Positions 481-59,615 of a stretch of 64,000 nucleotides of DNA are shown piece after piece. The DNA is from Oopsacas minuta. Its lineage: Eukaryota; Animalia; Porifera. The stretch's first letter is position 1. Each line of letters starts with the position of its first letter. The translations under genes and the position numbers were made by a program. The notes below the pieces were generated by a model. That model saw only the letters and a list, made by a program, of their open reading frames with translations, was not told the DNA's origin and searched no databases. The DNA is taken from the NCBI GenBank assembly GCA_024704765.1, contig JAKMXF010000302.1, positions 397,114-461,113 on the forward strand, in the 5' to 3' direction.

Positions 481-2010
481 ATGGAATATTTTAGAAAAAA
501 ACTTTCATACAGCGTTAAGATTTGCTTCCTAGCGATCTGTGTTGGTGTTATGTATTCTCAAACAGTTTACAGTAGCGTTCTCTTGTCTAAAGCATCGAAT
601 AATACCAATTCGAGTTCTTGGTTAGATCATTGTGACAGCAATGTGTTTCCATGTTCCGATAAAATAGTAGGGAATATTGTTCTAATTATTTTCTACGGAT
701 TAACTCTTGCCTTTGCAGCTAAACTCATTTCGGATGGAGCTGAGCTTTTGTTGGATCTGGGTCTACCAGCTGGGTTAATAGGTGGGGTTATTCTCCCCAT
801 TTTGGGGGCGGTACCAGACTGTGCCATGATAGCTGTATCTGGTCTTGGACCAAAGGACGAAGCTCAAACTCAGCTGTCTGTTGGTATGGGCACTCTAGCT
901 GGCAGTACCATATTACTGCTCTCAGTTGCATGGAGTGTATCTCTGCTACTGGGACGTGTAGACTTAGTTAAAGAGGGTAATCGTACTGTAGGAATAGACA
1001 AACAATGCACAGGGTTTAGTTTATATAAACAGGGTGCTGAGATCTCCAAACAGGTTACTGTTGTAGCTATTATAATGATGATAACTGCATTCCCGTATCT
1101 TATAGTACAGAGCGCTGATTGGGTATTTGGAGCTACCAAACTTAAACAAGCTCAGCCATTGTATGTAAAGTATGCTGCATTAGTTACAATGATAATTTGT
1201 CTTGTCTTCTTCGTCATGTACATTGTCATACAGGTAATTATGTCTGTGAAAATCGGGACCGCTAGAGTTAATAGGCATCAAAAGAAAATGGTTGCTGAAG
1301 CAGCTAAGGCTTTCTACATGACAATGTTTGATAAAAAGATAAACGAAAAAATAGGTCAAGAAGAGAAAAATTCTCTTCTTGAGAAGAAATATTTCGGAGC
1401 CTGGAAAATAGCTGCTGCTACTCGTGTACCTGATTCATATAAGGAAGAAGATGAAGAACAACATTTAATTCCCAAAGAAAAGGAGGAAAAGAATGCGAGG
1501 GATCCAAAATGGTTGATAGCAATTAAATCAATTAGTCAGCTGGTGATTGGTGTGTTTATGGTCACATTTTTCTCAGACCCAATGTGTAATGCACTGAGTG
1601 CAATGACAGATGTGAGGAACATACAGCATATCCCGATTAGTTCATTCTATCTCTCATTCATTATTACACCGGTCTGCTCTAATGCTTCTGAACTTGTATC
1701 TTCTTTCATATTTGCACTGAAAAAGGAGAAAGAGAACATTGCTTTAACATACGCCCAACTCTACGGTGCTGCTACCATGAATAATACACTGTGTTTAGCA
1801 GTGTTTGCTGGTCTTGTATACTTCAGAGATTTAGAATGGTTCTTCTCGGCTGAAGTAACAGTAATTCTCCTTGTAGAGTTTACAGTGGGTATTACAGCAT
1901 TGGCATTCTTCAGAATATACTATGTATTCCTGCTATTCTTTATTATCCTGCTGTATCCTCTCTCGTTGGCCATTGTTGTACTGCTAGAGAACTTAGTTCA
2001 TTGGGGTTAA
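481..2010 (+). CDS. CaCA-superfamily Na+/Ca2+ exchanger-like protein of the NCL/EFCAX type, intronless, 509 aa, no recognisable EF-hand
   Basis: Uninterrupted ORF with about 10 hydrophobic segments. SDGAELLL..GLIGGVILPILGAVPDCAMIAVSGL and SFIITPVCSNASELVSS..AATMNNTLCL resemble the alpha-1/alpha-2 regions of plant NCL exchangers. Confidence 0.8.
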   Translation: MEYFRKKLSYSVKICFLAICVGVMYSQTVYSSVLLSKASNNTNSSSWLDHCDSNVFPCSDKIVGNIVLIIFYGLTLAFAAKLISDGAELLLDLGLPAGLIGGVILPILGAVPDCAMIAVSGLGPKDEAQTQLSVGMGTLAGSTILLLSVAWSVSLLLGRVDLVKEGNRTVGIDKQCTGFSLYKQGAEISKQVTVVAIIMMITAFPYLIVQSADWVFGATKLKQAQPLYVKYAALVTMIICLVFFVMYIVIQVIMSVKIGTARVNRHQKKMVAEAAKAFYMTMFDKKINEKIGQEEKNSLLEKKYFGAWKIAAATRVPDSYKEEDEEQHLIPKEKEEKNARDPKWLIAIKSISQLVIGVFMVTFFSDPMCNALSAMTDVRNIQHIPISSFYLSFIITPVCSNASELVSSFIFALKKEKENIALTYAQLYGAATMNNTLCLAVFAGLVYFRDLEWFFSAEVTVILLVEFTVGITALAFFRIYYVFLLFFIILLYPLSLAIVVLLENLVHWG

Positions 2011-2485
2011 TCCGATTTCTAAGAAGATAAAGTTTTGAGAGTCGCTTTCACGCTTATTATAGTTTCATATATATTCAGCTTTGGTGTATACTAGATTTGT
2101 ATTTTAGCGATATATTATTATTAATATGGGTATAGTCATTATTTTGTTATTAATTGCTCTTTGAAATATACATATGTTCCTCCTAGTACACTTGTCTATC
2201 TAGATTGCAAATATTATTTGTGTTTACAACTCAAGTATTCAGTGTACCTTCCGAATTGTTTACACCGTTATTCCATAGCAACTAAATTGTTTTAATACTT
2301 TATACACAAACCTGACTGCTATATAACTGAGATTATAAAAATGAGGAATTTTGTAAATCTAACAATTTTCTCGTTCATTTTTATTGTGACTTTACTAACA
2401 GAGGCTCAGAATTGAAATCGCCTATATTTATTCTATTATAATTACTCAATTAGTATTTTAGTATTTTCAATTTAAAAGTTTGCAT

Positions 2486-6002
<3,517 letters not shown>

Positions 6003-6238
6003 ATTGATACACATGAATTCGTATATAATGTATATTGTTTTGTTTAAGACATATCGGCGAATCGCTTAGTGATTAGTAGAATTGAATTTGACTGTCTTAT
6101 TGTGTTTTGATCAATTAACTAGCCGGCATTATAATCCATTCACACATCAACATGATTTAGATGGGGATATTACTTAAATATTTGTTTGTTGAATTTTAAT
6201 TAATTGAAAGCAGCTTGTTAATTATAATATAGCTATAG

Positions 6239-9200
6239 ATGGCAGATACTAAGTTCAAAGCTGAATATGCTCTAACAAACAGAAGTAATTGCAAGAAGTG
6301 TAAGGCAACTATAAACAAGGCGGAATTTAGGATAGCTAAACTTACTCCCAGTCCCTTTTCAGAGGGTGAATTACTAGCCCAGTGGCATCATCCTGCCTGT
6401 CTATTCCAAACATTCCAAAGAGTACGAGCTACAACTAAGATAATAGAAGAACCTGATGACGTAGATGGATATGGAAACTTGGAAAATGAAGATAAGAAGA
6501 GTTTACTTAAACTAATTGAATCAATTGAGGTAATTAATAATACATCATACAGGTAATTGTACGTACTTATTTATATTGATGTCGTTGTAGGACAGAATAA
6601 AAGTGAGGAAGACACAGTTAGCCAAATCACCAGGTGATAATTCTACAGTCACTACACCGAAGAAATCTCCAACAAAATTACCTTATACTACACGTAAGTA
6701 TTTACCTAAGATTATTAGATTTTAATTAAACGCATGTCTATAGCTACAAAACAAACTGGTAGTAGTCCCTGCAGCTCCAGAGATAATACTGATACACTTG
6801 GTTTTGAGGAATTCACAGATCTGTGTATCAAACTTGAGAGTAACTCTTCTCACATCGCTAAGAAGAATCTGATCCAAGAATACTTGTCAGCTCTACCAAA
6901 AGAGCATACAATACAAGCAGTACAAATGTTGTTACCAGCTCATGGCAAAGATAAATCAAGAATATACCATCTCAAGGTATAATATCATTATATCGTATTT
7001 CCTCGAATATTTATCTACTATGCACACCCCAATATGTATATAGAGCCGGCAGCTAATGAAATTATTCTCTGGTATATTCTCCTCTGATTTCGATAAGATG
7101 AATGAAATGACAGAACAGAATGGAGATGTGTCTGAGACAATTTGCTCTTTCTTTCTGACATCTAGCTCTGTTTCTCCAGCTGATTCGGCTTCTCTTTCTC
7201 TGACAGAGATTGACAAATGTCTAGAAGAAATGTCACAAGATGGAACTGAGAAACATCAATCTAAAGTTATACGAGGAATTCTCTCTGATCTAACAGCTGT
7301 TGAGCTTAAATACTTTGTTAGATTGATAAAGAAAGATTTGAAGACAGCTGCTGGAGTTAAACCAGTCATGGATGCTCTATCAAATGATGCATATGCTGCT
7401 TTCCAAGTTAGAATCATTCATAATTAATTGATATACTACATTTCTTTACGAATTTTCCCTAAGGCAAGTCAAGATATAGAAGACGTAGTAACGCGAGTCC
7501 TGAAGGCTAAAGCAAATTCAACTCCTGGTAAAATGAAAAAAGAGCTGAGTATTCGTACTAATGTTATGGTACCGATTAAGCCTATGCTTGCTGAGGCATG
7601 TAAATCTTACGCACATGCTTTCAAGAGATGTCCTAATGGATTCTATTCAGAGCTGAAGTATGATGGAGAGAGAGTACAGGTATAAATAAGAAATTATGTA
7701 ATTCTCAAATAAAATATGATAGAGATATTTACTAATGTATTCAGGTACACAAACAAGGCGATGAATTTAAGTTCTACGCTAGGAGCTTAAAGCCAGTTGC
7801 TGGCCATAAAGTCAATGAGTTTACAGAATACCTTCCTAAGGCCTGCCCAGCTGATTCAATAATATTAGACTGTGAAGTTCTGCTAATGGATCTGAAGACA
7901 AGCAAACCTCTTCCATTCGGTACATTAGGTGTACACAAAAAGAGCAAATTTCAGGTAAATTCTTATCATTACGTCATAAAAATTGTGTTATAATGTATTG
8001 CTACAGGATGCTACATGCTGTCTGTTCATTTTCGATATAATGTACTTAAACGGAACGAGTTTAGTAGAAAAGTCATTGAAAGAGCGTAGAAAGATTCTAC
8101 ACAAAGTTGTTACTGAGATACCTAATCGTATACAACTTAGTCAAGGAAAATTGATCGTAAAAGGAGAGAAGCATAAACTGGAAGAGATGATGAGTAATGT
8201 GATGAAACAAGGATTGGAGGGTCTAGTTATGAAAGGGGTGGAAGGGGTATATGAACCAGGTCAGTTGTATTAAAAATTTTAAAACAATTTATACAATCGT
8301 TCACAATTATGGATAATTTGTTAGGGAAGAGACACTGGTTGAAAATGAAGAAAGACTACCTTTCAGATGGAGCTATGGCTGATTCTGCAGACCTTGTTGT
8401 CCTGGGTGCTTATTACGGGACTGGTGTAAAGGGTGGCCTAATGTCTGTGTTTCTTATGGGAGTTCATGATACTGTAAATAATAACTGGTGTACAGTAGCG
8501 AAAGCAGGAAATGGTCTGGATGATAATGAAATACAAAAACTACAGACAAAGTTTGATATGATTAAAATAGGGAAAGATATGAGTAAGGTTCCATCATGGT
8601 TGTCATGTACTAAGACTGTAGTCCCTGATTTCGTGGTGAAAGATCCAAAGAACTCTCAAGTATGGGAGATAGTAGGAGCTGAATTCTCAGAGTCAAGTAC
8701 TCACACTGCAGATGGTATTTCTATTCGGTTTCCCAGAATAGCTAAGGTTAGAGATGATAAAGGTTGGAGGGATGCTACCGATCTACAGAGACTCAAGAAG
8801 CTGTATCAAATATCGAAAGAACACACAGATATTGGTATTCTATTCAGGTAATATAAGATCTATCGCAGTGTGGTTCCCAACCTTTTCACTCATGGACCAC
8901 AGGTTGGGGATCGCTAATCTATAGAATAGATTAATAGCCGAATTTACAAGAATTCATTGTATTTCTTATAGTCCAGACGAACAGTCGGATACAGAAATTG
9001 AAATACCAAAAGTAGGTTCAAAAAGAAAATCTCCCGCTACCAAGACAACGTCTCCTAAGGTAAAGAGAGTAAAGGAAGAAGAAACTAATTCTTTTGACAT
9101 AGTAGATCCACTACCTGATATATTCTCTGGTATAAAATTGTATATTTCAGGAAAATTACCTGTAGATGTTAGAAATAACCTGGAGAGATATATTATCGCT

Positions 9201-49564: not shown

Positions 49565-52069
49565 TTAATTTTGAAACTTAAGAGGAAGGTTAGGGCCAAC
49601 CCTCTCAGAAGGATTGGGGTGCAGTTTGAGGACAGCTCCTGGGTTTGGATAAGGTCTCATCTGAAAAAGGGGACCACTGGCTGTCTCATCTGCTGCTCCG
49701 CCTCTCCCTTGTCCTTTTGTGGGAAGTCCAGTAGACCAAGATCCTCTAAATAACAAATATCCGAGGTTATTACACTAGGGAATATAAGCCAATCACTAAC
49801 CGTGGTATATCTGAATAAGATGAGGGATCCATTGGATCTATTTCATCATCATCCTCTCTGTGTTCTACAGTTAATTAAAATAATATAACATTTATTTAAG
49901 TGAAGAATCGGGTAAACATACTCTTTCTGTCTGCTCTATCATATGGTCTGTGTCTGTCTTTGTGTTTAGATTTACTCTATGGATATATACTGTTAGTAAT
50001 TATGCCAAGTAATATTCAAATCCTGCAGGAACAGTAGAACGTCCCTTCAAAACTGCAAAAATGAAATTAAACCGCATGAATAATTATCATATGAGATCAT
50101 AATTTGCTATCTAAGATTCACTCAATCTAGTACACCAACAAGTAAATATTATCACAAAGATTTTTTCAATAAGAAAGCATCCGAAGGATCAATACGCTTA
50201 TAGTAAGAGGGAACAGTTTCTATAATCTTAAATCCAAACCGTTCGTAGAACTCTATTGCTTCTTTATTATTGGTTTGAACATGAAGGGCAATTTCGTGGA
50301 TTCTCTTTCCCTCACAGTAAGATAAGAGATGCTCTAGAAGCTTTGTTGCAACTCCTAATCTCCTATAAGCACCAAGAACAGCTAGAGTCATTATATACAG
50401 TCTGTTGTTATCCTTGGTTTGATCGATCTTAGCACATACACCACCAACAACAATGTCTTTGAAATACGCGAATTTCGCTAGTTCTCCTAAGTCAGGCACA
50501 CCCTTATAGAAGTTCTCCTGATAGCTGAGAGGGAGAGCAGCTGCATTAATTATTTTCAGTTGTTTTAAGTTGTGCTGGGTTATCTCTCCGAGCTCAATCA
50601 AGTCTTTGAAGTTAGCTTTGTATTCATCATATGTAGCCATCTCGTATTAGCTAGTGCTAAATGTACCAGATACATTGTAAGTTAAGTTTGAAAAGGTTGG
50701 GAACCACTACTATTGATATCGCCACGTTAACGAGGTTCCATTGTATACTAATTCCAACAATTTGACATAATTATTGCTCTTAGACAAGGATGATCAATTA
50801 ATTTGTATTTTCAGCAAACAGTGACAAAAGTGTATTATACAACAATTCCATGATGTTATTAAAAAAGTGAATGGTCATGGCTCATGGGACATAATAAATG
50901 TAGTGTAGCCAATTATTTAGAACATATATCTCAAAATACTAAATATACTCATTGAGTCATTTTGTAGATATTTAATAATCTTCTTAGCAGAAAGTTGATA
51001 AAATACTAATTATGTTATTCAAGAACTTTAACCTCCTTATTGCATGCAGTAGGCCACCTGTCAACAAGATTAACTTACAAATCTATCTGGATGATTTCTA
51101 TGCTGTGATTTATCTTTGTGATTACTCTCGGGATGTTGGTCCTGTATCTGGTCTGGTGCTATTAGATAAATCCAAATAATTCTGTGCTGATATAAAATGT
51201 ATTACTAACTAGAAGTAAGCAATATAATAGATTACCCGTTATTTCATCAGGCGTGGGAGGTTCCCATTGTACGAGATCTGTGTCAGTATTCCAATAGTAA
51301 GGATAACCTCTGTACATTGATAATCAGTAGATTTTGTAAGATGTAGAATAGGTACTATAACCAAAGTTCATTCAGAAAATGCATTAACCCGTGGATTTTC
51401 GTATTTTTGGAGCATAATATAACTGATTACGTATTATCCGTGCACTTATAGAAAATAAGTAAGTAAACTTTTGCTGGGATATAAGATAATTTTGAAACCT
51501 CCTATTTCACGTTCCTAGCAAATGAAACCAGTCTCATTTCAGATATAAATTAAATCACGTACACTTATACGCACATACAATAATCTGAATGGTAATTAAT
51601 TCTTACGTGTTCTCGTCGATAACTTCTTCCCAGTTTGCTGGCAACGTAGACCGATCAAAGTCAACTCCCTAATAATCCATAAATACATAATTGCATGTGA
51701 TTCAACCACTTAATTGTCTAGCGATACAATATCTTCGTGAAAAATCACTAAATCATTAGATTTAAGATAATTAATATATATTCGTAAAATAACGATAATA
51801 AAAGAATAACATACCTTGTCACTAATCAATTTAGTATCTGTTTTACCAGTATCTGTAATAGAATTGAAAATTGAAGACAAATAATTCATTAGAAATAGTA
51901 TAGCGCAGCAGTTCCAAACCTATTTCACCCGTGGACTCCCTCCCATAGACAACAATACAAATTTTTACAGGACCAGTTAGGGAACAGCTGTTCTAGCTTA
52001 AAAAGTACCTTGAGATGAAAGCAAACCTCTTTTAGCGAGTCTAGCCTTCATAGCAGGAGTCAGTGACAT
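49565..52069 (-). CDS. PQBP1: Polyglutamine-binding protein 1 (WW domain), multi-exon gene span, not called as a gene by the ORF track
   Basis: Start [17 protein letters not shown]; WW domain [13 protein letters not shown]|[18 protein letters not shown]; C-terminal [16 protein letters not shown]|[25 protein letters not shown]. Splice phases are compatible. Confidence 0.92.
50152..50640 (-). CDS. NAA50: N-alpha-acetyltransferase 50 (NatE), intronless, nested in a PQBP1 intron on the same strand
   Basis: [61 protein letters not shown]. Confidence 0.93.
   Translation of the reverse strand: MATYDEYKANFKDLIELGEITQHNLKQLKIINAAALPLSYQENFYKGVPDLGELAKFAYFKDIVVGGVCAKIDQTKDNNRLYIMTLAVLGAYRRLGVATKLLEHLLSYCEGKRIHEIALHVQTNNKEAIEFYERFGFKIIETVPSYYKRIDPSDAFLLKKSL
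50695..50709. mobile_element. Solo hAT TIR, 55 nt upstream of the NAA50 ATG
   Basis: GGTTGGGAACCACTA matches the family TIR at 14/15 positions; no partner TIR or TSD found. Confidence 0.5.
51906..51990. mobile_element. Degenerate hAT MITE in PQBP1 intron 1
   Basis: CAGCAGTTCCAAACC..TTCACCCGTGGACTCC..GTTAGGGAACAGCTG. Flanks GTATAGCG and TTCTAGCT match at 5/8 with central TA. Confidence 0.6.
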
Positions 52070-52350
52070 GTTCAAACGTATAGAATAAGGAGAATATACA
52101 ATAGCTTATACAAAAATTAGAGTAACAATATACACTTAGAAATATTTAACAATAAAAATTAGTTATACAAACACACATACAAGTATTACTCAAGTAACAA
52201 TAAGAAATTGGACTTGGGAATATAATTTTATAAATAAAGTTCTACAATTTCGTTAACGAGGCATTATTACAAGTGAAGTTAGTGAAAAAAAAATGAAAGA
52301 GTATAAATTTTGGAGGATATAAAAGAGATTAAGTTGATAGAGTGGGAGTA

Positions 52351-53999
<1,649 letters not shown>

Positions 54000-54075
54000 C
54001 TACAAACTCACAAATATACAGTCAAACAAGTAAATAAAGTATTAAAATGGTGTTAATTACAAAATATTTCAAAAA

Positions 54076-55518
54076 CTACTTTTCTTCTTTGAAATAACGG
54101 CCCTCTACAATATTACAAAATAACTCATTTATCTCTTTTGGATCTTTCAATGCTTCAGTTAGCATCTTTTCGATGTTACGCATCATAGCGACCTTGTGTG
54201 TAGCCGATAATGGAAATGAGATAGTGTCAATTGATCCAGCTTTGAACCAGAATGTTATACTAGTTGTCAAATCAGGTTCTAGGGATTCGATTTGATGCCA
54301 CCAGTAAATTGGGATGTATAGAACATCGCCAGGAGAAAGAACACATTCCATGCCCTCTAATTGGGAGACAAGAGGATATAATGATAGATCTGGAGCTCTG
54401 AGATTAACCTAGATAAAAATAGCTAATTTCTACGCGTAAGGAATTACGTTAATCGATTCCAGAACGTAAAAACAACTTAAAATTAGAAATGATTATTCGT
54501 GTCATGTAATCTAGTGCACGTGTGTACCTTTGATTGTCGATCACAAGGATGATAGACAGGATAAGGGTAGAGCTTATCAAAATGACGTGGATGGAATAGC
54601 AAGCAGCGTTTCTCTCCACCAACTTGACAAAATAAGTTTTGCTGTTCATCATAATGCACTGGGGTTATATTACCTGGTTCTCCTATAAGAAGCATGTTAT
54701 TCGTCAGGGATCCCCATTTCATATCGCCGCTCCAACGCTTCACTAGTTCCCAATTGAATCGACGGAAATCTGAAAATATATTCGGCCCTACTGTATCATT
54801 TAGAGGTTGTTGCAAATAAGAGTATGTATCTCTTCCCCTTTGAGGTAACTGTATTCTTGAAAGAGTGAGAGAACATAAAGTTCACCCATAACTTACACCC
54901 AATTATTTAGTAACTAGCTTTTAGTAGACAGTTTTTCTTAGAGTGATAATGATGTTAATGACTAATCATCTTTCGGGACTGAGTTCCATGATGACAACCT
55001 CTGACAAACTGAATCACGATTACGTATCGATAAATGCAAATCACCAAGTATGGAAAATAATAAAATATGTTTGGACTTTTCTCTGGACGTCATTTGCCAT
55101 GGCAACGCGTTAAATTGATATTCTAAAAATAGCTTACACTGTATTTTTAGTAGCAAAAATTAATTAATTCTATAAATTACCGTTTGACAAATTCCTGAAA
55201 TTTCATTTCATCGGTAGAAGCTTCTAGAACAAATTCCATTTTACCCTTGAGTTGAGTGACTTTATTTTGATCAAAATATTTGAACATTTGATGTCCTTTG
55301 GTTTGCATAACATTATACAGGCCCCTATCACCTAAATTTTCCGTCAGGTATCCTAGATCCCATTTCTCTAATGCAGGTCCAACTAAATTTGAACCTTCGA
55401 TTACAACAGGCAACTCCTTATATAAATAATCCTTGAGCTCTGGACTGTCGACAGATATACGGGAAATTGGAATGAGGGGAAAATTATAAGTGTATAGAGT
55501 AGAAATATCTTCAACCAT
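54076..55518 (-). CDS. HIF1AN: Factor inhibiting HIF (JmjC asparaginyl hydroxylase), multi-exon gene span
   Basis: EMKFQEFV, YLQQPLNDTVG, LTNNMLLIG..GNITPVHYDEQQNLFCQ, LYPYPVYHPCDRQS, PGDVLYIPIYWWHQIES, TTSITFWFK, KVAMMRNIEKML. Intron 1 is 54856-55180. Confidence 0.93.
54943..55017 (+). ncRNA. SNORD2: Box C/D snoRNA, SNORD2/snR39B-like, antisense within HIF1AN intron 1
   Basis: Terminal stem GTGAT/ATCAC; box C ATGATGT 54949; D' CTGA 54979; C' ATGATGA 54988; D CTGA 55009. The guide AATCATCTTTCGGGA matches my recollection of SNORD2 and pairs with the conserved LSU rRNA sequence CCCGAAAGAUGGU. Confidence 0.85.
55086..55106. promoter_or_regulatory. Adjacent CRE-like (GACGTCA) and RFX X-box-like (TTTGCCATGGCAAC) sites in HIF1AN intron 1
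   Basis: 13/14 match to the X-box consensus GTTGCCATGGCAAC, containing the perfect 12-bp palindrome TTGCCATGGCAA. Function not shown. Confidence 0.45.
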
Positions 55519-55855
55519 CTAATATTTAATTAGCTTAATCTGACACAAGAATAAACACCGGTGAAATGAAAGCAGGTTGAACCACGTGGTGTGTAAAGGA
55601 TACCAAGTAATATGATCGTATGATGAAAGCTATGATCTGCTTTAAAATAAGATCCTGTTCTATTGGAGACAAATAGAAGAGGAATCACTAATCTTAGTCC
55701 CACCTCAAAGCATTGTCCTTATGTAAGCAGAATGTAACAATATAGGACTAATTAGAAAGGATAATTTTATCTCTTAGAATAAATCTTAAATCACATAATA
55801 TCTATAGACAAGATCTATGCTACGAAAGTTACGTAGAAATGTGTTTCTAACAAAT

Positions 55856-57429
<1,574 letters not shown>

Positions 57430-57885
57430 TTCTAATTTCACAATTCTAGAATCACAGACAAAACAAATGAATCAAAATGTGCGGATCTGAGATAATGTCT
57501 TTATGAATGTAATTAGAGTTATAAGTAGAATTTCTAGTGTCAGTTTCCAGCATGGTCGTATGGAATGCATCGAATTCCAAGATGTTCGATGACAAGTCAA
57601 TTTGAAAACTCGACATTCCTAGTTTTTATCGAATCATTGGAACAGAAACCCAATCAGAACCTGTACCAGTTTACTTTCATACTCAATCAAAGGTAGTATT
57701 TGCCATGTAAGCAGTCAAGTATGTTACTATAAATACAAGAGAGTATTTCTGTTTGTAAAGTGTGTTCCTATCTTTTCACTGAAGATTTCAATTCTATTTT
57801 TTATTCAATTTTATCAGATTGATTGATAATTTCTTCGATTTGAATTTTTATTAATTTTTGGATTGCTCATATTGTAAATTACGTA

Positions 57886-58479
57886 ATGGCTGCAAATATG
57901 GATTATATTGTCGCGTCTGTTGGGTGTATGTCAAAGAGAGGCTACTCAATTTTCCATGATTACTTCAACCTCGCACAGCTTGTGAAATGCCGACAGGTGG
58001 AACAGGAAGACGTTTTAACGAAGGAACCGCGTGATTCATCGCCTGTGTTTACTGACAATTCACTAGATCGCTTCTCTCCCCCCGATTCACCAGGCGGTAT
58101 GAACATGGCTCAATGGACAGGTGGTTCGGACCGATTGAATGACTGGACTTCTCCCCTGGCAAGTCCATCTTCTCCGCTAGGTGGATGGGGACAGAAAAAG
58201 AAAGCAGAAATTGCGACAGCCAGACGAGGCAAATCTGGTAAAGTAGTAGGCGCAAAGTTGGTTTGTGTGTTTTGCCGTAACAACGGAGAAGATGAATCAG
58301 TGTATACTTCGCATGCTCTGAAAGCCGGCGATGGCAGAGTCACATGTCCCATCCTAAGGGCTTACACCTGCCCTCTATGCCATGCATCTGGAGACGATGC
58401 ACATACGATCAAATACTGCCCAACTAATGCAAACAATCTGGCGAAACAAACGAATCCAAGCTTACTTTTATCGGCATGA
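57886..58479 (+). CDS. nanos: Nanos (tandem CCHC zinc fingers), intronless
   Basis: [47 protein letters not shown]-terminal [13 protein letters not shown] resembles the NOT1-interacting motif. Confidence 0.96.
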
Positions 58480-59615
58480 GTCAACTAATATTATATAGAA
58501 TCCGCCGAGATCTATTCATCTTTTGTCTTTCAAATCAATCTTATTTCAAATCTTTCAAATCTTTCAATTGCTTATTGATTTTTATTGGTGATTATAATAT
58601 TTCGCCTTAGCAATTCTATAGATAATCAATTTTAAAGATTATATTAATGTTGAATGAATATATTAATAATTGTATGAATCATAATTGCCTCCAATATAAA
58701 CATCAAAGAATATAGAGAGCAGGGTTAGAATTACTCGTCAATTTTGGTATATGTGAAATTAGATTTTAAAAGATTATAATGTGGATGTTATGCATAGAAA
58801 TTTGACTCTGGTGGAGTATGACAGCATGATCTGCGTTTCTTGATTAATTCAGAATGTGCAACTAGAATTCAGTGTTCAAAGTTAAAATGGTATGCAAAAT
58901 GAATCATTCACGAAAATTGCACAATTTTCAATTCATCATTCTAATAATGCTAATCATTTCCTACGCAGTAACCGTAGCACATTTTTAGTTAAGAGTGTGC
59001 GCCATATTTAATTACTAAAACGAAAATAAAAATTCATATCACTAAATGAATTCTAATTTTAGAATGGTGCTATAGTAATTGTATTACAGAGTTCGATTGC
59101 GTAGATACATGGGAGATAGTCCATTCATTGATAATGACATCTTTGTAAGTTCCTTAACGTCATGTCGATATTTTAAGAAGATAAAGGAAAAGGACCTAGT
59201 ATGATTCGAACGAACGTAATAATAGCCCTACTTAATTTCCCTATGGCCGCGTGTGTATAAGAAACCCCATCGCGCGAGGCCCATATATCACTACAATTAG
59301 TTGCCCAATTATATAATTCGAAGGAAGTTGGGATAAGTCTTCAGATATTCAAGTGAGAAGTCAGTGAAAAATGTATTTCAACTAGGTACCAATTGTGATT
59401 TCTAGAGGATGCCCTATCAGGACATGTCTAGTGCATTTCTAGTGATAAGCTCACTATCACTGTTTCGTCCTTACAAGATACGCAACAAAACAAAGGCAAA
59501 TCCTTGTGGTGATAAATGTATTATCTTAATTTGCAGACACAAAAAAGACAAATGAAGCTGATAATAGGATTAGATGTAGAATGGAAGATGCATGTGATAT
59601 ATCAACAAGCACGTA

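Follow-up and report, generated by a model that had tools for sequence, protein, structure and literature searches.

A SNORD2-clan box C/D snoRNA gene nested antisense in a HIF1AN intron of the glass sponge Oopsacas minuta, with a candidate snRNA-type promoter

Introduction

The SNORD2-like guides of vertebrates are processed from introns, and human SNORD2 is located in an intron of EIF4A2. Autonomous box C/D genes are represented in vertebrates by U3, U8 and U13, which are driven by a proximal sequence element (PSE) and in which the 5' end of the RNA is the transcription start; these three act in processing or acetylation and, unlike the snoRNA described here, are not ordinary methylation guides. 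Demosponge snoRNAs have been reported from introns of ribosomal-protein genes (Perina et al. 2012, PMC3412847). In Caenorhabditis elegans, intronic non-coding RNA loci, snoRNAs among them, are independently transcribed and associated with UM1/UM2 motifs (PMC1474057), and a further paper (PMC2527325) reports in vivo tests of these motifs.

The gene analysed here, from the glass sponge Oopsacas minuta, resembles each of these systems in part. Its box C/D guide is conserved with human families, as are those of the demosponges, whereas it lies antisense to its intron and is preceded by a promoter element, while the demosponge snoRNAs of Perina et al. are sense-intronic. With the vertebrate autonomous genes it has in common that the U3 gene of O. 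minuta carries the same PSE, at -58. From its sequence, we consider the locus likely to be an autonomous, snRNA-type gene for a box C/D snoRNA of the SNORD2 clan, nested antisense in an intron of O. minuta HIF1AN.

Results and discussion

A complete box C/D snoRNA in antisense to HIF1AN

A contiguous stretch of 64,000 nucleotides of O. minuta DNA, hereafter the window, was analysed. A first-pass annotation had proposed a box C/D RNA at positions 54943-55017, and each feature it described was found where it had been placed. The interval is thus confirmed as a box C/D snoRNA in which terminal stem, C box, D' box, C' box and D box are all present. The snoRNA and the surrounding gene comprise the following features.

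54528-54855, minus strand: HIF1AN exon B, downstream of the intron, JmjC core (lower boundary approximate)
54856-55180, minus strand: HIF1AN (FIH) intron containing the snoRNA gene in antisense (splice sites and homologue match)
55181-55518, minus strand: HIF1AN coding exon upstream of the intron, with Met at its start (weak Pfam Cupin_8 match)
54943-55017, plus strand: box C/D snoRNA of the SNORD2/SNORD96 clan, 75 nt (boxes and stem read directly; Rfam); on the contig, C302:452056-452130, plus strand
54943-54947, plus strand: 5' stem, GTGAT
54949-54955, plus strand: C box, AUGAUGU, invariant in the alignment of three glass-sponge contigs
54965-54977, plus strand: D' guide, AUCAUCUUUCGGG, pairing with the species' own LSU rRNA
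54979-54982, plus strand: D' box, CUGA
54988-54994, plus strand: C' box, AUGAUGA, of which UGAUGA is invariant
54997-55007, plus strand: D guide, ACCUCUGACAA, pairing with the species' own SSU rRNA
55009-55012, plus strand: D box, CUGA
55013-55017, plus strand: 3' stem, AUCAC

The terminal stem comprises 5 bp (GUGAU/AUCAC), and the C box shows a single deviation from RUGAUGA, a final U for which the A ahead of the D box is a possible pairing partner. Both internal boxes are present, and the guide spacers measure 23 and 14 nt. The snoRNA sequence occurs as a single copy in the O. minuta genome, and this locus was the sole match when the window was scanned on both strands for generic box C/D RNAs.

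Around the snoRNA, the HIF1AN intron is bounded by a donor AAACG/GTAAT at 55181/55180 and an acceptor TTTCAAG/AATACA at 54856/54855, and the reading across it (..EFVKR-IQLPQRG..YLQQPLND) agrees with homologues, the exons being searched one by one. HIF1AN exon B matched solved FIH structures over residues 146-243 with E = 4e-38. This match and the intron at 54856-55180 bear out the earlier placement of HIF1AN on the opposite strand, and the antisense position of the snoRNA in the HIF1AN intron is real.

Most animal box C/D snoRNAs are derived from introns, and the snoRNA could accordingly be processed from an intron in a plus-strand host transcript that runs antisense to HIF1AN and has escaped annotation. 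GT and AG dinucleotides are present at 54845 and near 55132 and 55150, where the first-pass annotation had suggested a donor and acceptors, and the demosponge orthologues, situated between same-strand carrier exons, look sense-intronic. However, the proposed donor did not hold up as such, falling within HIF1AN exon B (minus-strand start 54855), so that coding accounts for its conservation. The proposed acceptors fared no better: their region does not align between species, and in one relative (contig L009) the gap between the snoRNA and the HIF1AN exon is only about 66 nt. No conserved plus-strand ORF or exon was seen.

Two guides with targets in the species' own rRNA

The rDNA of O. minuta was delimited with Rfam on contig L007, and both guides were compared with this rRNA, numbered from L007:4085 for the LSU and L007:1149 for the SSU. 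The complementary segments are present in both rRNAs. The D' guide pairs with LSU 1273-1285 over 13 bp, one of them G-U, which places its fifth position on G1276 in CCC[G]AAAG, the SNORD2/snR39B site to which the first-pass annotation had assigned it. For the D guide, the pairing with SSU 1025-1035 comprises 11 Watson-Crick bp and sets the fifth position on U1028 in UUG[U]CAGAGGU; the nucleotide predicted earlier, the U of UUG[U]CAG, was thus the right one. Among shuffled guides, only 0.4% and 0.6% attained a run of 11 Watson-Crick bp placed in the right register. No match of at least 8 bp to 5.8S rRNA was found for either guide, comparison with U1-U6 and U3 gave no match comparable to the rRNA pairings, and a literature search with the guide sequences returned microRNA and primer matches only.

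SSU U1028 probably corresponds to about U919 of yeast, in the helix 23 region, and we know of no methylation at UUG[U]CAGAGGU of 18S rRNA in model organisms. By analogy with known box C/D RNAs, the snoRNA would join a fibrillarin-containing snoRNP, which is predicted to direct Gm formation at LSU G1276 (CCC[G]AAAGAUGGU) and Um formation at SSU U1028. The equivalence of LSU G1276 with human 28S G1509 and yeast G805 is drawn from sequence context and from PMC3511168, in which Gm1509 (human), Gm803/805 (yeast) and Gm812 (Arabidopsis) are tabulated for RF01299/RF00055 of clan CL00072.

Family placement and conservation in sponges

At gathering thresholds, Rfam returned no family in the window, and a permissive scan together with a genome-wide SNORD2 search was needed to place the snoRNA. 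The best Rfam score of the window copy was obtained with SNORD96 (RF00055; 29.1 bits, E = 0.0013), below that family's gathering score of 43; with SNORD2 (RF01299) it reached 26 bits, under the gathering score of 37, yet it was the top SNORD2 match genome-wide. Both families belong to Rfam clan CL00072, and the earlier designation as SNORD2-like therefore stands at the level of the clan, while the window copy stays below the gathering scores of both families.

The sponge snoRNA shares with SNORD2/snR39B the D' guide CAUCUUUCGGGA followed by CUGA and the LSU target context CCC[G]AAAGAUGG, and the same D' antisense element, AUCUUUCGGGACUGA, is found in the SNORD96 consensus. The D guides, in contrast, differ. 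In the sponge this guide consists of 11 conserved nt complementary to 18S rRNA, where the SNORD2 consensus in Rfam has another sequence, whereas the SNORD96 consensus carries CUGCAAUU and CUGA, antisense to 5.8S rRNA at the Gm75 site; the sponge guide, directed at 18S rRNA, is without a 5.8S match. Unlike SNORD2, the glass-sponge gene is also antisense to its intron and, judging from the upstream motif, would have a promoter of its own. As the orthologue of a methylation guide that is both ancient and well known, the RNA as such is ordinary; a familiar kind of RNA is combined with a mildly unusual gene layout, which its own promoter apparently explains.

In three contigs (L011, L009 and L010) from two assemblies of close relatives, the snoRNA is located in the same HIF1AN intron, likewise in antisense, and the gene order nanos-PSMC-HIF1AN-HPD is kept. 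Judged by this gene order and by a HIF1AN exon identity of 90-93%, both assemblies probably represent other hexactinellids. Identity to the relatives amounts to 83-91% in the snoRNA versus 36-44% in the flanking intron.

A demosponge contig (L079) contains two copies of the snoRNA with both guides identical, one of which (copy 1, L079:34-107) reaches 43.8 bits with the SNORD2 model, above threshold. The terminal stem of the demosponge snoRNA differs from that of O. minuta and still pairs (AGAGAGG/CCUCUCU versus GUGAU/AUCAC). Both copies are oriented in sense among the exons of a mitochondrial-carrier gene and, like the demosponge snoRNAs of Perina et al., appear sense-intronic.

From glass sponges to the demosponge, the D' guide part CAUCUUUCGGGACUGA is invariant, and the D guide part CCUCUGACAAACUGA shows no change among all six sequences, the demosponge included. 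That the window copy falls under the gathering score of every Rfam family might suggest a fortuitous resemblance to a box C/D RNA, or a pseudogene in decay, in either case without function. Such an origin is scarcely credible, given that boxes and both guides are unchanged over this distance while spacers, stems and flanks have changed, and given the small fractions obtained in the guide-shuffle controls. The second guide arm has been kept between demosponges and glass sponges, and it predicts a 2'-O-methyl-U in 18S rRNA at its target site.

An snRNA-type element upstream of the snoRNA

Two further features precede the snoRNA on the same strand.

54883-54896, plus strand: snRNA-type PSE, CACCCATAACTTAC; its core, CACCCATA, begins at position -60 relative to the 5' end of the snoRNA
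54904-54916, plus strand: A/T-rich, TATA-like stretch, TATTTAGTAACTA, between PSE and snoRNA (weak; tentative)

To score the PSE, a weight matrix was derived exclusively from the elements that precede U1, U2 (three copies), U3, U4, U5 and U6; the site reached 13.46 bits, the best score on either strand of the whole window; for the 8-nt core, the probability of a background window doing as well in the same positional range was P = 0.0003. Elements of the type A[AC]CCATA are found at -56 to -60 of the O. minuta U1, U2, U3, U4 and U5 genes (-56 to -65 when U6 is included). The RNA polymerase III (Pol III) genes U6atac, MRP, U6 and RNase P carry the PSE at -58 to -69, with U6atac at -58 and RNase P at -69, and U12 shows a weak match only, at -59. 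In the three contigs from the relatives the PSE has retained its distance from the snoRNA despite divergence of the spacer, with lower scores of 9.4 and 8.1 bits.

The first-pass annotation had offered an independent promoter as one of two alternatives, and the snRNA-type PSE at -60 favours it. A high-scoring element at the distance expected for an snRNA-type gene also argues further against splicing from a plus-strand host transcript, an origin we regard as quite unlikely.

The TATA-like assignment is tentative because the stretch is not at snRNA spacing: in the snRNA genes of O. minuta an A/T-rich box, read by eye from the sequences, lies 27-29 nt downstream of the PSE, and the best TATA-like word at the snoRNA lies just 20 nt downstream. 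Across species, only a TAAC/TAGAC-like remnant of this stretch aligns. A shared 3' box was sought in the flanks of snRNA and snoRNA genes; these had only loose A-rich words in common, from which no 3' box could be defined.

An autonomous gene might also be transcribed by Pol III from a U6-type promoter composed of PSE and TATA box. This would suit the TATA-like word between PSE and snoRNA and the occurrence of the PSE in U6, U6atac, MRP and RNase P genes, the last with a core identical to that of the snoRNA, CACCCATA; since the PSE positions of the Pol II and Pol III classes overlap, as U6atac at -58 illustrates, position does not discriminate between them. However, next to the TATAAAT-type boxes of U6, MRP and RNase P the TATA-like word is weak. 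The snoRNA also lacks a T-run at its 3' end, both in the window and in L011, whereas each of the four Pol III genes (U6, U6atac, MRP and RNase P) terminates in five or more T, and this argues against Pol III. We therefore hold Pol III transcription to be unlikely.

For the autonomous snRNA-type gene, the most likely arrangement given that its PSE matches that of snRNA genes and recurs at other snoRNAs, the PSE about 60 nt upstream would recruit the snRNA-gene machinery. Transcription, most likely by RNA polymerase II, would start within a few nucleotides of 54943 and would yield an RNA with its own cap. Transcription driven by its own PSE would need neither splicing nor a host transcript, and the orientation relative to HIF1AN would be irrelevant; the backwards position in the intron is apparently due to this snRNA-style promoter.

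The same element at other snoRNA genes

The U14-, SNORD31- and snoR38-like snoRNAs of O. minuta also carry the PSE. They belong to five snoRNAs collected with Rfam models, so that no promoter motif entered the query, and taken together these five carry the PSE in the same position (Fisher p = 2.6e-6), the individual values being 0.0005 for the U14-like, 0.0036 for the SNORD31-like and 0.012 for the snoR38-like snoRNA. Three other model matches (L081, L083 and L084), weak and without a PSE, look like false positives and were left out of the count.

Read on the minus strand, the element precedes the HIF1AN 3' splice site by 27-40 nt in the window and by 24-40 nt over all three species, and part of its conservation could reflect the branch-point region of HIF1AN. 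Were it nothing else, the snoRNA would have to stem from some other unrecognised transcript, for example read-through from a convergent neighbour. We judge this to be very improbable, as 13 conserved nucleotides exceed what a metazoan branch point needs and the motif recurs at the same distance, at unrelated loci, before the U14-, SNORD31- and snoR38-like and three other snoRNAs. It likewise precedes U1-U6, U6atac, MRP and RNase P, and more weakly U12.

The presence of the PSE at SNORD2-, U14-, SNORD31- and snoR38-like and further snoRNAs hints at a lineage change from intron processing to autonomous genes. A broader proposal, for and against which we see the case as evenly balanced, is that box C/D guides of glass sponges as a class left their host introns and became autonomous PSE-driven genes in either orientation within a very compact genome, together with a Um in 18S helix 23 that would be specific to the Hexactinellida-Demospongiae lineage and guided by the second arm of SNORD2. 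If true, an early-branching animal would have switched its mode of snoRNA biogenesis, as has been proposed in parallel for nematodes. The sponge gene would share with the C. elegans UM1/UM2 loci an expression uncoupled from the host gene, and it differs from them in phylum and motif sequence, in being a computational case, and in that its element is common to U1-U6, U6atac, MRP and RNase P, and weakly to U12. The second guide arm and the possible change of biogenesis are chiefly of interest to specialists in snoRNA evolution; the biogenesis point also bears on the annotation of nested small-RNA genes in compact genomes, and the promoter consensus of sponge snRNA genes is made testable.

A pattern search combining PSE, C box and D box was dominated by matches in terminal repeats belonging to a transposon family, so that only its non-repeat matches were informative. 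Three further box C/D snoRNAs with complementarity to rRNA carry the PSE, these having been found through the motif itself.

Architecture and predicted rRNA targets of the snoRNA

Read on the plus strand, positions 54943-55017 represent a textbook box C/D RNA, and this locus was the sole match when both strands of the whole window were scanned for generic box C/D RNAs (boxes, a stem of at least 4 bp and a 10-nt antisense element).

Elements of the box C/D RNA
54943-54947, plus strand: 5' stem, GUGAU
54949-54955, plus strand: C box, AUGAUGU
54965-54977, plus strand: D' guide, ending a 23-nt spacer (AUCAUCUUUCGGG-A)
54979-54982, plus strand: D' box, CUGA
54988-54994, plus strand: C' box, AUGAUGA
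54997-55007, plus strand: D guide, within a 14-nt spacer (CA-ACCUCUGACAA-A)
55009-55012, plus strand: D box, CUGA
55013-55017, plus strand: 3' stem, AUCAC

The species' own rDNA (L007) was found by pattern search and its limits were set with Rfam (SSU, 1149-3139; 5.8S, 3549-3698; LSU, 4085-8303). Alignment of the guides to these rRNAs, as the first-pass annotation had proposed, revealed both complementary segments. The D' guide pairs with LSU 1273-1285 over 13 bp, one of them G-U, and places the fifth nucleotide upstream of the D' box opposite G1276 (CCC[G]AAAG), in agreement with the predicted G of the SNORD2/snR39B site. For the D guide, the partner is SSU 1025-1035 (11 Watson-Crick bp), and the residue facing its position five is U1028 in UUG[U]CAG, exactly as anticipated. 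In-register Watson-Crick runs of 11 bp occurred in 0.4% and 0.6% of shuffled guides (20,000 trials), and no comparable pairing of either guide to 5.8S, U1-U6 or U3 was found. The second target in 18S rRNA, where methylation is predicted, is moderately interesting.

Genomic context and conservation in glass sponges

Minus-strand exons encoding FIH/HIF1AN (match to solved FIH structures over residues 146-243, E = 4e-38) flank the plus-strand RNA, which corroborates its suspected antisense position within an intron of this gene. The exons were searched one by one; the junction, read as ..EFVKR-IQLPQRG..YLQQPLND, agrees with homologues. Gene nesting is common in glass sponges (PMC10282587).

Host intron
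54856-55180, minus strand: HIF1AN intron; donor AAACG/GUAAU at 55181/55180, acceptor UUUCAAG/, exon from 54855

A search with HIF1AN exon B retrieved two near relatives with 93% and 90% identity. The window (52000-58500) and both related assemblies (L009-L012) have nanos, PSMC (proteasome ATPase), HIF1AN and HPD in one and the same order. The relatives carry the snoRNA in the same intron, antisense there too; this intron is shorter in L009 and L010 (about 220 nt versus 325 nt). Comparison with the window revealed 83-91% identity for the snoRNA block versus 36-44% for the surrounding intron. Differences are confined to the non-guide spacers, and neither the boxes nor the guides vary, save for one A/U difference at the D guide's outer end. 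Judged from its sequence, the snoRNA is a real, conserved guide RNA of an ordinary class, with predicted expression.

Family assignment and demosponge copies

No Rfam family reached its gathering score at the locus. The best permissive match was SNORD96 (29.1 bits, E = 0.0013), whose consensus has the D' antisense element in common with the snoRNA. The proposed likeness to SNORD2 held insofar as the locus was the top match of the SNORD2 model across the genome assembly (61,460,524 bases, 365 contigs, about 35% G+C), in which the snoRNA is single-copy, but its 26 bits fall below the gathering score of 37. SNORD2 (RF01299) and SNORD96 (RF00055) constitute one clan, CL00072, and this group guides Gm1509 in human 28S, Gm803 in yeast and Gm812 in Arabidopsis (Hoeppner and Poole, PMC3511168). 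Going by its D' guide, the snoRNA would be a functional equivalent of SNORD2/snR39B. It differs from SNORD2/snR39B in its additional conserved guide for 18S rRNA, the Rfam consensus of SNORD2 having another sequence at the D-guide position, and as a glass-sponge lineage copy with its own predicted promoter.

A pattern scan of metagenome contigs yielded JAAGOD010004556.1 (L079, 1-4158) from a sponge metagenome, the vent population being described as mostly demosponges (PMC8518922); the contig is probably demosponge host DNA within the holobiont metagenome. It contains two copies in which both guide-plus-box blocks are identical to those of the window, whereas the terminal stem (AGAGAGG/CCUCUCU) is unlike the window's, with pairing kept. 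Copy 1 exceeds the SNORD2 gathering score (43.8 bits), and copy 2 has a degenerate C box (AUGAAGA). As both guides are identical in this contig, the double-guide design would be older than the divergence of glass sponges from demosponges. The contig carries an RPL35A exon and then exons of a mitochondrial-carrier gene on one strand, and both copies lie on the strand of the carrier gene, between or after its exons, an arrangement that reads as the classical sense-intronic layout. Demosponge snoRNAs described so far lie within introns of ribosomal-protein genes (PMC3412847).

A probable snRNA-type promoter element

For the plus-strand RNA, the first-pass annotation had offered either an independent promoter or a spliced plus-strand host RNA. 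The splice sites suggested for the latter did not hold up: the donor at 54845 falls within HIF1AN exon B, the acceptors near 55132 and 55150 lie in a stretch unalignable between species, and only about 66 nt separate the snoRNA from the HIF1AN exon in L009. The independent promoter found support in the sole conserved island outside the snoRNA in alignment A1, CACCCAUAACUUAC at 54883-54896, located upstream at a fixed distance. The species' U1, U2 (three copies), U3, U4, U5 and U6 genes, retrieved with Rfam models, have an A[AC]CCATA-type proximal sequence element (PSE) upstream, one anomalous U3 copy excepted. The core of the PSE begins between -56 and -60 from the RNA 5' end (U6, -65), and an A/T-rich box follows near -30. 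With a weight matrix built from eight snRNA sites only, the snoRNA site being left out, the snoRNA element scored 13.46 bits, more than any other site in the 64-kb window, both strands considered. At unchanged distance, the elements of the relatives scored 9.4 and 8.1 bits. Only 0.03% of background windows equal the snoRNA's 8-nt core in the -70 to -48 range. The element also precedes genes outside the matrix, namely RNase MRP (-62), RNase P (-69; core identical to that of the snoRNA, CACCCATA), U6atac (-58) and, weakly, U12; the consensus across the species' small-RNA genes (L015-L023, L088-L091) is AACCCATA. A second, weaker U3 match (L022, C183:1259-1437, plus strand, 45.7 bits) has its core only 15 nt upstream versus about 58 and may be a rearranged copy, a pseudogene or a U3 with a mispredicted start.

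Seen from HIF1AN, on the minus strand, the element occupies branch-point position, 24-40 nt ahead of the acceptor, and could thus represent the branch-point region of that gene; however, that it also occurs at unrelated snoRNA and snRNA loci argues for the promoter reading as the main one. Given a predicted snRNA-type promoter, the strand of the snoRNA is no longer paradoxical. Vertebrate U3, U8 and U13 are PSE-driven, and the sponge snoRNA likewise has a PSE-type element. Similarly, intronic ncRNA loci of C. elegans, snoRNAs among them, are autonomous and motif-bearing (PMC1474057; PMC2527325).

The core starts at -56 to -60 at the Pol II genes U1, U2, U3, U4 and U5 (weakly at U12) and at -58 to -69 at the Pol III genes U6atac, MRP, U6 and RNase P. 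A terminal run of five or more T is present in all four Pol III genes and in none of the Pol II genes; U6, MRP and RNase P have strong TATAAAT-type boxes. The 3' end of the snoRNA lacks a T-run, both in the window and in a relative's contig L011, and its TATA-like word is weak. As its PSE also stands at the distance seen at U1, U2, U3, U4 and U5, we favour Pol II as the polymerase, probably initiating at 54943 or a few nucleotides from it. No 3' box was definable for the snoRNA.

Further snoRNAs with the element

Five further snoRNAs were located with Rfam models, the promoter motif being absent from the query.

snoRNAs located with Rfam models (P of the core within -70 to -48)
L080, C345:96605-96703, plus strand: U14-like, P = 0.0005
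L085, C110:158534-158602, plus strand: SNORD31-like, P = 0.0036
L087, C302:170934-171004, minus strand: snoR38-like, P = 0.012
L082, C18:25011-25079, plus strand: SNORD18-like, P = 0.07
L086, C255:291505-291568, minus strand: another box C/D RNA candidate, P = 0.14

None of the five reaches its Rfam gathering threshold. Guides typical of the respective family are present in the first four, and a PSE-like element lies about 60 nt upstream in most of the five (Fisher combination, p = 2.6e-6). Motif-anchored pattern searches yielded three more, with the PSE at -59 to -65.

Box C/D RNAs from motif-anchored searches
L055, C210:18291-18418, minus strand: 14 Watson-Crick bp to SSU rRNA
L074, C354:949252-949385, minus strand: 11 Watson-Crick bp to LSU rRNA (CCAAAUGCCUCG)
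L041, C311:247748-247825, minus strand: comparable rRNA match not found

No such element was found upstream of a weaker snoRNA candidate (L024). A switch in how snoRNA genes are organised, possibly across the lineage, would be moderately interesting; the glass-sponge genome papers PMC10282587 and PMC10280926 do not mention snoRNAs. A repeat family starting AACCATACCAGTGTCAAGAAGAAAGTTGGTAC, present as inverted pairs 2-10 kb apart on many contigs of the species (L045-L073), resembles terminal inverted repeats, probably from a many-copy DNA transposon.
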